From Phaeosaccion multiseriatum (lineage: Eukaryota; Protista; Ochrophyta, other classes), in NCBI GenBank assembly GCA_965112735.1, contig OZ218956.1, positions 3,348,001 to 3,412,000 on the forward strand: 64,000 nucleotides of DNA, in the 5' to 3' direction. Within the stretch, counting starts at the first letter, position 1, and every line of letters starts with the position of its first letter. Under the pieces are notes generated by a model, which saw only the letters and a program-made list of their open reading frames with translations, was not told the origin of the DNA and searched no databases. Below are positions 19,475-31,868 of this stretch, one piece after another. The position numbers were made by a program, and so were the translations under genes.

Positions 19475-22400
19475 TCACTGGGAGCCCACCGGGGGTAGCT
19501 TGAAGGGCTTCCCCTTGCCAGGCTGCGTGTGGCCGGCCCCCACCGACACAACCACAACCTCCGAAGGGGGTTGTTGGTCTGTCGGGACAACGACAACTTG
19601 CTCAGCACCTCCACCACTCTGACCACCCTCACCCCCCTGAACACTCGCCATGGTCACAGTCGTGCCCGCAGGCAAGTGCTGCATCTCTTCTTCTTCTTCT
19701 TCTTCTTCTTCTTCTGCTGCTGCTGCTGCTGATGATGATGATGATGATGCTACTACTGCTGCTGCTTCGGTGTTGCTGTGAGCTGCCGCCCCTCCTTGCC
19801 GACTCGGAAGCACTCCTCCCTGGGCATTATGCTCATGCTTCTTGTCCTCGGTGGCGGTGGCGATGTCCTCACAGTACGTCGGCTCGTCAGCGCTGTCGTG
19901 CCAGTGGGGGTCCGCGCTGTCATGTTTCACCATCCCAAGTAGAGGCTTCTCCGTGGCCGGCGTCTCTACAAGTACTGGAGCACCCCGGCTGTCCGGGCGT
20001 TTGTCGTGAACCCCAGCCCCAGCCGTTGGTGATACAGCCCCAACCCCAGCCGTTGGTGATTCACCATGTATGCGGCTGCTCACCCTCTGACAGCTGTGAT
20101 CCGCCTCTGCATCACTGGGGCTGATCTTCTCGCCGGTCATTCCCTTGGTCCAGCCGCACACGGAAGTGTTAGGAGCCGGAGCGGCGGCGGGGTTGGCGGT
20201 GGTGTTGGCCTCCTCGATATCGGCTTGGTGGTCGGCCTTGTGTTCGACATGGACACCTTCGTCGACAACATCGCCACTACTACCCTCACTACTCATTGCG
20301 AGAATTTTTCCCCTAGAGCCTAGCCACCGACCACCCAGACCCGGCCCCTGACTCTGACCCTGACTCTCATCCTGGCCCGAGCTCTTCTCTCCTCTCTTCT
20401 TTGTGTTCTTCTTCGACCGGCGTACAGCTTCCAGGGAGGCGACACAAGGCTGCTCCTGTTCTTCTCCCCGGCCTATATGCTTCTCCTCTGCCAGGTGCTT
20501 CTTGTTCTTCTTCTTCTTCTTCTCATGCAGCGGTCCTACTCGCACTCCTCCGCTCCCCTCCGCCCCCTCCCCTGGACCAGTGGTGCCGGCAGCCATCAAG
20601 GCTCCACTCCCCCGACCCCACCTCAACTTGAGCTCCGCGTCATACTCATGCGAACACTCCGGGCATGACAGCGCCACCAGAACCGTCGGCGCTGCCATGC
20701 CCTCCTCCACCTCCTCCTCTCCTCCTCCTCCTCCTCCTCCTCCTCCTCCTCCTCCTCCTCCTCCTCCTCCTCCTGCGTCACGTGGGTCAGCCCTGTCCCT
20801 GCTCCCCCCCGCCCCCGTGCCTCTGCGGGTGGGGCCACTGGAGTCGCGGGAGCCGACTGTGCCCGTGAGGTAAGTGCCATCACCGTATTTGTACTCATAG
20901 TAGACGTGTTGCATCGTCTAGGGAGGGAGGGATGGAGGGAGGGAGGGAGGGAGGGAGGGATAGAGGGAGGGAGGGAGGGAGGGTGTTAAGTCAGTGAGTG
21001 AGTGGGTGAAGAGTGAGAGAGGGGGGGGGGGGTGAGAAGGGGTGAGTATGTGCCTCGTGTCAGCCCGAGAGAGCCACAGACTTACACACACACTTACACA
21101 CACACAAACACACACACAGCAGTCACAATTACGTAATTCTTGGGGGTTGACTCCCGTATATCAACAAACTACGCCCCGCACGGCACGTTCCCCCTCACTC
21201 ACCCTCCATATCCTCGGCCACAGAACGACAAAGAGCGCAAAGACGCCCCCAGCAAGCATGACGAGGCAGCGCAACAGGGCAGAGAAGTGCACGACTAGAC
21301 CGCCGAACTGGGCGATGCTCAGAAGCAGCATCAGCACGAGGAAGTTGTAGTTGCTGTACATGATTGCTGCAGTCAGATGGCAGTACGTGGCAGCAGCAGA
21401 GAGGAGGGATGTGTGTGTGTGTGTGTGTGTTGCGAAGGGGGGGGGGGTGCTGAGTTGGGTGTGCGTTTGGTTCAGGGGCACAAGAAATGTTGTCTGTCTC
21501 TTCTTGTTGAGTGCGTTGTGAGGGCTGTGAGGGTTGGGTAGCAGGGAAGAGTGGTGGGCGACAGACAGCGACATGCAAGGCCCTAATCTTTAACGCAAGC
21601 ACGGCAGGATACAAAGAGGCAGAGGCAGGCCGGTCACCCGCGCCAATTCCACCCCTCCACTTGCACCCCCCAACCCACCCACTCCACATCCCACCTTGGC
21701 TCTCGACAAAGTCGCTGCTGAAGTCCCTACTGGCCCAGCTGAGGTAGCAACCGAAGGTAATGAGGAGGAACTTGTCCACCCAGAAGAAGAGTTGCGCGGT
21801 GGTGGCGTCACCATTGGGGCGGCACTCCGTTCTGTGGTCGGAAGTTGAAGTTGAGGACCATGTTGAACATTACTCCCTCCCTCCCTCTTACGCACTCATG
21901 TATTCACGCACTCATGCACCCAGTTGGTCCTACGCACCCACTTACATTACTCAGTCACTCCCTTTGACCGCACTCACACACCCACGCACCTGCCCCGCAC
22001 CCACACACACACTCACGCACACGCACGCACACACACACACGCACACACGTACCCACGCACCCACACACACACGAACACGCACGCACACACCCACACACAC
22101 ACGCACACACACACACTCACGCACACACACCCACGCACCCACGCACCCACGCACACACCCACACACCCACACACCCACGCACCCACCTGTCTACGAGCGC
22201 CGACCCGACGCGTTCTTGATAGTCCATGGGTACCATCGGACTGGTGATGCTCCAGGCAGTGAGAATGGACACCTCAAGCAGGAGGATCACACCCACCACC
22301 CCGAGGGTCTGCCGCATGGTGATGCGACCACGCTTCAAGCGGCGGCGAGCGCTGTCGATGATGCGATATACCTAGGGGGTTGGGGAGGAGGGGAGGGAGG

Positions 22401-31400: not shown

Positions 31401-31868
31401 ATCTCCATTGCGTCGCTGGAGGACGACCCGTCCCCCGCCACGATGTCTGTGAGGGAGCCCACACATAAGGAAAGGGAGAATGGGAGGAGGAAGGTCGTTG
31501 TTAACTCTTTCCTTCCGTGCACTCGCCTAGGCTACGATAGACTAAGGTCAAAAAAGAAGGGTCTCCCTCTAAATTGCTGGACCTCCTTTGTGGGACTGAA
31601 GCAAAGCCCCCCCACAGGATTTGAACTTACAGTAAGCGGCGTCTGGGTGGTAGAAGGTTGCTTCCACAACGCCCTCAGTCCAGTTGCCATCGCTGCTCGC
31701 CCCAAGGGAGATGCCATCACTACTGAAAGCCTCCACGCGCACCAGGGACGCACTGACACTCCCCGTCCTGCAACTGGAACTAAAGCAGGCCGCCCACATC
31801 AACGCGGTGCAAGCCTGTCGCACTCCTCCTGGCCAAGGACGGCGCCGGCGCCGCCGGCAAACCCCCAT
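19475..31868 (-). CDS. Class C (7tm_3, GABA-B-like) GPCR with an N-terminal bacterial-type extracellular solute-binding domain (SBP family 1 / MalE-like); 22 exons, ~1339 aa
   Basis: Exons: 31868-31631, 31446-31315, 31071-30891, 30549-30473, 30363-30321, 29365-29243, 28761-28618, 28328-28235, 27582-27479, 26950-26863, 26316-26213, 25840-25764, 25309-25110, 24817-24698, 24518-24293, 23837-23749, 22958-22916, 22547-22540, 22371-22187, 21831-21695, 21366-21203, 20917-19475. All introns are GT-AG, all phases agree, total 4020 nt. SBP motifs: [56 protein letters not shown]. 7TM motifs: [56 protein letters not shown]. Confidence 0.88.
23081..23530. repeat. (CATA)n microsatellite, ~112 units, intronic
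   Basis: Direct reading. Confidence 0.95.
25324..25583. repeat. (GGGA)n microsatellite, ~65 units, intronic; reads (CCCT)n on the sense strand, next to the acceptor
   Basis: Direct reading. Shorter (GGGA)n/(CCCT)n tracts occur in many introns across the window. Confidence 0.95.
29374..29754. repeat. (GAT)127 perfect trinucleotide repeat, intronic
   Basis: Direct reading. It ends a few nucleotides before the acceptor of the exon starting at 29365 (-). Confidence 0.95.

Follow-up and report, generated by a model that had tools for sequence, protein, structure and literature searches.

A predicted intron-rich gene for a class C receptor with a solute-binding-protein-like ectodomain in the alga Phaeosaccion multiseriatum

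On the minus strand of a 64,000-nucleotide stretch of the Phaeosaccion multiseriatum genome (the whole of which is here called the window), we found what is predicted to be one intact, intron-rich eukaryotic receptor gene, extending from position 31868 down to position 19475. Its product would be composed, in order, of a leader, an ectodomain of ~500 aa that is homologous to solute-binding proteins (SBPs), a linker with seven conserved cysteines, a class C seven-transmembrane (7tm_3) domain, and a cytoplasmic tail of 480 aa. We consider it probable that this protein is a sugar-type SBP-class C receptor, which senses a nutrient or cue and does not transport it. To our knowledge, almost nothing is known of receptors by which algae detect dissolved organic compounds. 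The gene, together with its relatives from Phaeothamnion and Chattonella and with look-alike diatom records, provides a concrete, testable candidate sensor, and its ectodomain is a self-contained predicted binding module that is suited to expression and ligand screening.

The preliminary description of this locus had proposed 22 small exons lying among microsatellite introns and joining in one frame. We rebuilt the gene independently and recovered this structure, with 22 exons running from an ATG at 31868 to a stop codon that ends at 19475. The spliced model contains 4020 bases of coding sequence for 1339 aa, with no internal stops and no frameshifts, and includes every motif quoted in the earlier description. 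All 21 introns are GT-AG, with donors gtgagt, gtaagt, gtacgt and similar; together they amount to 8374 nt, 48% of which is tandem repeat, and a repeat is present in 16 of the 21 (TRF). When the spliced product was compared with P0002, a protein of Phaeothamnion confervicola, aa 36 to 859 aligned with an E value of 5e-204 (phmmer), and in an alignment to three homologues the conserved columns continue across every one of the 21 exon junctions. Given these two results, the 22-exon model is far from what chance would produce.

The first 13 exons, all of them on the minus strand like the rest of the gene, encode the leader and the SBP-like domain. Exon 1 (31631..31868, aa 1 to 79) begins at the first ATG downstream of an in-frame stop codon, has the donor gtaagt, and encodes the leader, which may be a signal peptide, together with the first part of the SBP-like domain; the N terminus of P0002 aligns from aa 36. 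In this leader, a basic stretch is followed by one of only moderate hydrophobicity, whereas the leaders of the homologues are more clearly hydrophobic. The domain continues through exon 2 (31315..31446, aa 80 to 123), which has a W-Q-P-F motif that is invariant in the family, exon 3 (30891..31071, aa 124 to 183), which has LLGTTQVP, exon 4 (30473..30549, aa 184 to 209), around which the hhalign match to bacterial SBPs begins, and exon 5 (30321..30363, aa 210 to 223). The core SBP motif, W-x-A-V-P-L-x-S-D-T-R-I-L-x-Y-N, is in exon 6 (29243..29365, aa 224 to 264), the region where the Pfam SBP_bac_1/8 matches of the relatives fall. Exon 7 (28618..28761, aa 265 to 312), with WTWEKF, and exon 8 (28235..28328, aa 313 to 344) are followed by a variable part of the domain in exon 9 (27479..27582, aa 345 to 378), the acceptor of which is the first AG past a long pyrimidine tract. 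The remainder is encoded by exon 10 (26863..26950, aa 379 to 408), exon 11 (26213..26316, aa 409 to 442; FLGGSAL and AWLLL), exon 12 (25764..25840, aa 443 to 468; SPPPFES-W), and exon 13 (25110..25309, aa 469 to 535), which holds the end of the domain and the first cysteine of the linker, C530.

We compared this ectodomain, which had been described as a MalE-like SBP, with known domain families at several levels. Two relatives score above the Pfam cut-offs, P0005 for SBP_bac_1 (30.1 bits, cut-off 26) and P0006 for SBP_bac_8 (28.5 bits, cut-off 27), in matches that span only ~80 to 100 residues. The P0002 ectodomain had no Pfam or NCBIfam match, no NCBIfam model, equivalogs included, matched any of the three relatives, and Pfam found nothing on the single SBP exons, pieces that are too short. 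Alignment by hhalign of the four-member family with five bacterial sugar SBPs gave a probability of 99.1% and an E value of 9.5e-19 over 271 columns, a value that is possibly flattered because the five had been chosen from tblastn matches; the global alignment placed positions 30 to 500 of the family against positions 1 to 412 of the bacterial SBPs. The ectodomain from the window alone reached 96.9% (E 1.3e-10) in the same kind of comparison and 45 bits with an HMM made from the five bacterial SBPs, while ten column shuffles gave at most 1% and a reversed alignment gave 0.1%. In the PDB, the family profile matched the Listeria SBP Lin1841 (5ysb) best (E 6e-4), and UgpB, UspB and a maltose-binding protein came next; phmmer with the P0002 ectodomain alone found UgpB only (E ~4), and the three-sequence profile performed better. 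Annotated genes among the tblastn matches listed to plasmids were always solute-binding proteins, and the clusters that come closest in language-model features (0.97 to 0.98) consist of bacterial SBP_bac_8/1 proteins. An AlphaFold2 model of residues 20 to 530 of P0002, the closest relative, computed from a 3-sequence alignment, had a mean pLDDT of 31.4 and was unusable.

A type I ANF_receptor match had been named beforehand as the finding that would speak against an SBP ectodomain; we observed none, and a type I Venus-flytrap ectodomain was rejected, with hhalign giving 0.6% against a type I Bmp ectodomain. These comparisons support homology of the ectodomain to bacterial family-1 (SBP_bac_1/8, sugar-ABC type) solute-binding proteins, in agreement with the preliminary description, and likewise support the view that it is not related to the type I binding domain; its fold would be type II. 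The homology to bacterial CUT1 SBPs such as Lin1841 and UgpB extends over nearly the full length in profile-profile alignment. However, those proteins are soluble or lipid-anchored partners of an ABC permease, whereas the ectodomain described here is fused to a 7TM receptor, is extended at its N terminus, contains insertions, and shares only ~22% identity with them over the hhalign-aligned columns.

Proteins of the SBP_bac_1/8 families also bind glycerol-3-phosphate and other non-sugar ligands, so sugar is only the likeliest ligand class. It is conceivable, and in our estimate quite unlikely, that the architecture is as described and the ligand is not a carbohydrate, in which case phosphorylated polyols, organic osmolytes, polyamines, metal chelates and bacterial metabolites would be candidates. 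The presence of the glycerol-3-phosphate binders UgpB and UspB among the best PDB matches is consistent with such a ligand, as are an identity of only ~22 to 31% to any bacterial SBP and the lack of an NCBIfam equivalog match, but the best single PDB match and most of the annotated tblastn matches listed bind sugar or oligosaccharide, and the Atlas look-alikes belong to the CUT1 family of carbohydrate ABC SBPs. A narrower form of the sugar-type receptor reading, which we regard as speculative and unlikely, is that the ochrophyte SBP-GPCR family is a surface sensor of a specific oligosaccharide or sugar-like cue that feeds G-protein signaling. Candidate cues would be fragments of storage or wall glucans or of uronates and exudates of bacteria or neighboring algae. 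Across the family, identity is 42 to 44% in the ectodomain and 28 to 40% in the linker and 7TM domain, and an ectodomain more conserved than the 7TM domain across genera would point to one ligand shared across classes.

The cysteine-rich linker noted earlier, which follows the ectodomain, contains seven cysteines within aa 530 to 598. Four of them (C541, C551, C554 and C566) lie in exon 14 (24698..24817, aa 536 to 575), where they occupy family-invariant columns and where the alignments to two further proteins, P0003 and P0004, start. Exon 15 (24293..24518, aa 576 to 650) encodes the end of the linker (C584 and C598), TM1 and the start of TM2, exon 16 (23749..23837, aa 651 to 680) the rest of TM2, the first outer loop and a conserved cysteine, Cys674, atop TM3, and exon 17 (22916..22958, aa 681 to 694) TM3. 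Beyond an 8-nt exon that is discussed below, exon 19 (22187..22371, aa 698 to 758) covers the second inner loop and TM4 and enters the second outer loop, exon 20 (21695..21831, aa 759 to 804) continues that loop with Cys762 and adds TM5 and the third inner loop, where E802 lies, and exon 21 (21203..21366, aa 805 to 859) encodes TM6 and TM7, ending in P-R-I-W at the position of the class C P-K-x-Y motif. The last exon, exon 22 (19475..20917, aa 860 to 1339 plus the stop codon), encodes a predicted low-complexity cytoplasmic tail of 480 aa, the length given in the preliminary description. The tail is rich in G, A, E and S, has Gly and Glu runs, and showed no Pfam domain above threshold and no conservation with the homologues.

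Three of these exon pieces match Pfam 7tm_3 (PF00003) in colinear order, each below the cut-off on its own: exon 15 at positions 4 to 49 (E 5.8e-05, 23.3 bits), exon 19 at positions 97 to 147 (E 6.3e-05, 23.2 bits), and exon 20 at positions 171 to 198 (E 0.093, 12.8 bits). The homologues score 121 to 170 bits for the same domain, with P0002, P0003 and P0004 at 154 to 170 bits, and our model aligns unbroken to these last three. A Kyte-Doolittle analysis (window 19, threshold 1.5) detected TM1, TM2, TM4, TM6 and TM7; TM3 and TM5 are less hydrophobic, yet they align with 7tm_3 helices of the homologues. Cys674 and Cys762 are in family-invariant columns, and these two residues along with K694, R697, E802 and P855-R856, all present in the model, are at class C hallmark positions (PMC3727952). 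The P855-R856 pair in TM7 is a conservative Lys-to-Arg change that is shared with P0002. The matches in the exon pieces, the scores of the homologues and the hallmark residues all agree with the class C signatures reported before, and the membrane part is a class C (7tm_3) domain.

Like the canonical class C receptors mGluR, CaSR and GABA-B, the predicted receptor has a 7tm_3 domain with a cysteine pair between TM3 and the second outer loop, basic residues at the end of TM3, an acidic residue ahead of TM6, and a proline followed by a basic residue in TM7. It also shares with them a large ectodomain that descends from bacterial binding proteins and would have the shape of a clamshell. In contrast, the ectodomain of those receptors is a type I ANF_receptor domain, while the one here would be type II and related to SBP_bac_1/8. 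The canonical combination of ANF_receptor and NCD3G is not found: Pfam matched neither domain in any of three homologues, NCD3G is absent here, and the linker cysteines follow their own pattern. The TM7 motif also differs, with P-R in place of P-K.

The part of the TM3 motif that lies between exons 17 and 19 would be supplied by exon 18 (22540..22547), a predicted 8-nt microexon, CGTGGAGG, with the acceptor ...gcacag and the donor gtaagt. It finishes a Thr codon and encodes Trp-Arg, which restores the conserved K-TWR-V motif where TM3 reaches the cytoplasm, and the homologues have exactly three residues, VWR or IHR, at this position. Among 22 candidate internal exons, this one alone fits. A direct join of exon 17 to exon 19 was rejected, as all six in-frame options lose conserved TM3 residues. 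The splicing and expression of the locus, like the microexon, are what we infer from the genomic sequence. As a case for annotation, the gene combines 22 short exons, a microexon within a conserved signaling motif and introns that are half microsatellite, and such loci are easily broken by automated gene models.

We also asked whether the model might join two genes, one for a secreted SBP-like protein and one for an N-terminally short class C receptor, or represent an unexpressed pseudogene, and we judge both to be highly improbable. A search of sequencing runs found no exon-exon joints at the locus; the true holders of the locus belong to one sample of one study, and contigs from these runs are colinear with the genome and cross exon-intron borders, so we took them as DNA. 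Rows labeled 'RNA' in that search matched only 5 to 9% of words and were set aside as repeat matches, because an (ATAC)n array accounts for an equal fraction of the first query, 485 of its 5501 bases. No protein encoded in the window is among the protein-database matches of 564 to 1795 aa, and the frame is kept only through the 8-nt microexon. Against these points, which would fit a pseudogene or a false join, stand a frame that is open through 22 exons with canonical splice sites, an ectodomain that is the most conserved part of the protein, and a conserved linker that joins the SBP and 7TM halves unbroken in three homologues, of which two are known from transcripts free of introns. P0005 is an uninterrupted ORF of 911 aa on a contig of 3175 nt and clusters with MMETSP transcripts that are flagged as complete; P0006 comes from the transcriptome of Chattonella subsalsa. 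The SBP-7tm_3 fusion is real in these relatives known from intron-free transcript contigs.

The same reading of an SBP-class C receptor had been accompanied by the proposal that it arose by domain recruitment, possibly from a bacterial gene. From ~aa 550 onward, the model shares its linker and 7TM domain with P0003 (TIG and Bmp) and P0004 (Laminin_G_3 and cadherin-like), and the occurrence of one linker-7TM cassette under other ectodomains fits recruitment, in this case an assembly that would long predate Phaeosaccion multiseriatum. A bacterial source is tenable as an old event only. Recent transfer was rejected, as the gene has 21 spliceosomal introns, low identity (~22%) to bacterial SBPs and eukaryotic relatives, and the SBP-7tm_3 architecture is common to other ochrophytes, diatom records and chytrids; the chytrid cluster, found among Atlas look-alikes at 0.95, is a lead from feature similarity only. 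The family to which the gene belongs is of photosynthetic stramenopile type and has at least four members across genera. An exhaustive representative search with the TM1-2 exon returned four proteins only, word-index searches with two family alignments (A2 and A1) added no new members, and a metagenome contig scan with alignment A2 gave 600 pattern sites, none of which was confirmed.

Bacterial SBPs serve uptake systems, and one could ask whether the protein is a tethered binding protein or a 'transceptor'-like component of uptake and not a signaling receptor. In Plasmodiophora brassicae, proteins that combine 7tm_3 with SBP_bac_1 or PBP_like_2 have been read as 'novel transporters' that were probably acquired by horizontal transfer (Rolfe et al. 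2016, PMC4815078). They resemble the protein described here in the fusion of a bacterial-type binding domain to 7tm_3, a likeness at the level of domain composition, and they differ in coming from a rhizarian parasite (PMC4815078). We hold an uptake role to be very unlikely for the algal protein, as its membrane part is a full 7tm_3 domain in which the residues typical of class C are present (PMC3727952). In addition, the neighbors found are a dynein heavy chain, pirin, an MCU-like gene and an STI1-like gene, with no ABC permease or ATPase among them. Fused to a 7TM domain and without ABC parts nearby, the ectodomain would be SBP-like in its putative binding and not as a component of transport. 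We know of no 7tm_3 protein that transports a solute.

For the sugar-type receptor, we propose the following mechanism. The ligand would be a small and polar solute, a sugar or oligosaccharide being the most likely, and the two lobes of the type II 'clamshell' expected by homology would hold it between them and close upon it. The linker, stiffened by disulfides, would relay this movement to the 7TM domain. The receptor would probably act as a dimer, as characterized class C receptors do, and the 7TM domain would then activate a heterotrimeric G protein or another partner. The tail may serve as a docking and regulatory region, and the role of the whole would be the sensing of a nutrient or cue, not transport.

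The pairing of SBP_bac_1 with 7tm_3 is not a new design: Allomyces, gut fungi and Plasmodiophora all provide published examples. The gain from the present gene is incremental to that extent, and the earlier suggestion of novelty stands only in that our literature search found a functional characterization of such a receptor in no alga. Glutamate-family (class C) GPCRs of Allomyces macrogynus carry SBP_bac_1 (clan PBP, CL0177) at the N terminus and 7tm_3 at the C terminus and lack NCD3G, as here (Krishnan et al. 2012, PMC3251606); they are fungal, whereas the present gene is algal, and the likeness is one of the Pfam domain pair. In anaerobic gut fungi, class C GPCRs carry type II SBP ectodomains of a sugar-uptake-like kind in place of the ANF/Venus-flytrap domain, along with cysteines that do not align with the nine-cysteine domain, and these proteins are likewise uncharacterized (Seppala et al. 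2016, PMC5168858). They form a large lineage expansion that has been read as plant biomass sensing (PMC5168858), in contrast to the photosynthetic stramenopile-type family described here. The nearest look-alike of P0005, at 0.95, is an ESM Atlas cluster named 'putative GABA-B receptor-like protein (Fragment)', in which Bacillariophyta is the commonest taxon. In this cluster, 7tm_3 is present in all members, SBP_bac_8 in 75% and SBP_bac_1 in 53%, at a length of ~890 aa; the likeness to it is one of features alone, without an alignment or E value, and serves as a lead only. Diatom GPCRs with N termini like an 'ABC sugar transporter' have also been described, and since they were labeled PBP1 (type I) (PMC3727952), they may be a different set from that of the diatom Atlas cluster.

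We rebuilt the gene by script from the minus strand, reading the stretch from 32000 to 20850, and obtained a spliced model that runs from an ATG at 31868 to a stop codon ending at 19475, with 22 exons in a single frame, 4020 coding bases, and a product of 1339 aa. This model reproduced the exon number, single frame, coordinates, and all motifs quoted in the preliminary description. All 21 introns start with GT and end with AG, the donors being mostly gtgagt, gtaagt, or gtacgt and the acceptors pyrimidine-rich. The introns sum to 8374 nt, 48% of it tandem repeat according to Tandem Repeats Finder, with arrays in 16 of 21; these include the very long microsatellites (GAT)127 in intron 5 (29374 to 29754; perfect, 100% match) and (ATAC)121 in intron 16 (23058 to 23542; 97% match).

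The most unusual feature of the locus is exon 18, an 8-nt microexon on the minus strand (22547 to 22540) placed by conserved columns and splice signals. In exon 17 the last complete codon is that of Lys694, and the exon ends in phase 1. When exon 17 was joined directly to exon 19, either the frame was broken or, in six of six in-frame options, conserved TM3 residues were lost. Of the 22 internal exons of suitable length class that could be placed here, the 8-nt exon alone yields exactly three residues (T-W-R, where relatives have V-W-R or I-H-R), and its splice signals are the best among the candidates. Conservation thus makes this predicted microexon well supported.

With the TM1-2 exon as query, an exhaustive search recovered four proteins. 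One of them is P0002 of Phaeothamnion confervicola (1026 aa, recorded as "unnamed protein product"), whose alignment to the spliced model covers aa 36 to 859 (E 5e-204). A word-index search with the P0002 ectodomain gave two further relatives: P0005 (911 aa), which lies as an unbroken open reading frame on a 3175-nt contig and has MMETSP transcripts labelled complete as members of its 90% cluster, and P0006 (885 aa), a Chattonella subsalsa transcriptome protein. In a four-way alignment of the model and three relatives, conserved columns are continuous across 21 of 21 exon junctions, and identity to the window gene is 42 to 44% in the ectodomain and 28 to 40% in the linker plus 7TM. It is from these relatives that the solute-binding protein (SBP) and 7TM halves are predicted to lie on a single transcript. 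A sequencing-run search for the window locus found no RNA evidence; the rows labelled "RNA" contained 5 to 9% of the query words, which is the share of the (ATAC)n array in the first query, so we read them as repeat matches. The true holders of the locus come from one sample in one study, and their contigs, which are colinear across exon-intron borders (e.g., 21438 to 21985 and 22469 to 23050) with zero joints, are genomic DNA.

The proposed class C membrane half was borne out. Three exon pieces matched Pfam 7tm_3 in colinear order (profile positions 4 to 49, 97 to 147, and 171 to 198), and the relatives scored 121 to 170 bits. In the window gene, several residues sit at class C hallmark positions taken from a published list (PMC3727952): the Cys674/Cys762 pair, Lys694 and Arg697 where TM3 reaches the cytoplasm, Glu802 before TM6, and Pro855-Arg856 in TM7. 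Five helices were clear in a simple hydropathy scan, with TM3 and TM5 weaker yet aligned to the 7tm_3 profile.

For the ectodomain, Pfam gave no match to single exons, the pieces being too short, or to the P0002 ectodomain searched on its own. P0005 reached 30.1 bits for SBP_bac_1 (curated cut-off, 26) and P0006 28.5 bits for SBP_bac_8 (curated cut-off, 27). A PDB search with a three-sequence profile found the Listeria oligosaccharide-binding protein Lin1841 (5ysb; E 6e-4), followed by UgpB, UspB, and a maltose-binding protein, with weaker colinear matches to the C-terminal lobe. When 7.3 Gb of plasmids was searched with tblastn, 214 records matched, and among the matches listed every annotated underlying gene was a solute-binding protein. 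Against five bacterial SBPs picked from these matches, a choice that may flatter the E-values, hhalign gave a probability of 99.1% (E 9.5e-19, 271 columns) for a four-member family that included the window's spliced ectodomain and 96.9% (E 1.3e-10) for the window ectodomain by itself; the global alignment paired family positions 30 to 500 with bacterial positions 1 to 412. Ten column shuffles gave at most 1% and a reversed alignment 0.1%. A type I (Venus-flytrap) ectodomain, one of the contrary outcomes named in the preliminary description, was looked for in the same way: with P0003, a 7tm_3 protein that shares the linker and 7TM and whose ectodomain is type I (Bmp), the value was 0.6%. These shuffle, reversal, and type I controls argue that the SBP signal is real. 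Language-model look-alikes were bacterial SBP_bac_8/1 carbohydrate binders (0.97 to 0.98). AlphaFold2, run on the three-sequence alignment only, returned a mean pLDDT of 31, and a type II fold is predicted because members of the homologous family adopt it; SBP_bac_1 is assigned to Pfam clan PBP, apart from the ANF type (PMC3251606). At the level of homology, the ectodomain is SBP-like, as first proposed.

The cysteine-rich linker was confirmed, with seven cysteines from aa 530 to 598 in columns invariant across the family; NCD3G was sought in the relatives with Pfam and matched none. P0003 and a second such protein, P0004, both from Logan assemblies, join 7tm_3 to other ectodomains (in P0003, TIG plus Bmp, the latter an ABC binding protein of type I; in P0004, Laminin_G_3 plus a cadherin-like domain). 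Since their alignments to the window gene start within the linker, at about aa 550, linker plus 7TM behaves as a cassette with different outer domains, suggesting a receptor family built of modules, in which ectodomains have been exchanged. Assembly by domain recruitment would fit. The long C-terminal tail was also recovered, as 480 aa of low-complexity sequence rich in G, A, E, and S and without conservation among relatives. A short C-x-E-C-x-H motif occurs in the tails of the window gene (20650 to 20680, about aa 940 to 951) and P0002 (about aa 925 to 935), which are otherwise unrelated and low-complexity. The window tail also has a weak match to DUF7575, which is zinc-ribbon-like (E 0.095). 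Chance may account for this.

Homology therefore supports the reading of a sugar-binding-protein-type class C receptor. Most likely, a solute would close the clamshell ectodomain, and the closed clamshell would act via the cysteine-rich stalk on the class C 7TM domain. Glutamate-family GPCRs with SBP_bac_1 N termini were described from Allomyces in 2012 (PMC3251606), and in anaerobic gut fungi about half of some 100 class C GPCRs carry sugar-type SBP type II domains (PMC5168858). In Plasmodiophora, seven proteins join 7tm_3 to SBP or PBP domains and were interpreted in that study as transporters (PMC4815078). On class C-like receptors of diatoms, "ABC sugar transporter"-like N termini were noted in 2013, under the label PBP1 (PMC3727952). 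A literature search found no functional study of such a receptor in any alga, in agreement with the earlier claim. Judged by its sequence, the window gene is a further instance of an already known, functionally uncharacterised receptor type.

The same architecture is present in other ochrophytes, and Atlas look-alikes sharing it form a diatom-dominated "putative GABA-B receptor-like protein" cluster and a chytrid cluster. Recent transfer of the SBP domain into this genome was considered and rejected in favour of recruitment long ago, to which the 21 spliceosomal introns, the low identity to bacterial SBPs (about 22% in aligned columns), and the occurrence of the architecture in other eukaryotes together point. 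The Phaeothamnion homologue (L001:1809-7964) has 9 exons, compared to 22 in the window gene, and of its eight introns just two have a window-gene intron within 1 nt (the first intron and one after the TM3 Lys, each one base off). The unshared remainder suggests heavy lineage-specific gain or loss, with sliding possible.

Neighbouring coding pieces in the window encode a dynein heavy chain C-terminal domain (67 to 633, plus strand; E 7e-61) and, on the minus strand, pirin (11739 to 12542), a mitochondrial calcium uniporter-like protein (15307 to 15711), and an STI1/HOP DP domain (62030 to 62272); no ABC transporter parts were found among them. We also observed paired open frames, 42517 to 43035 with 51975 to 52517 and 45516 to 45920 with 55018 to 55422 (minus strand), which had no Pfam match. 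The members of each pair lie about 9.5 kb apart and have identical or near-identical first residues, suggesting a tandem segmental duplication of about 42.5 to 46 kb and 52 to 55.4 kb.
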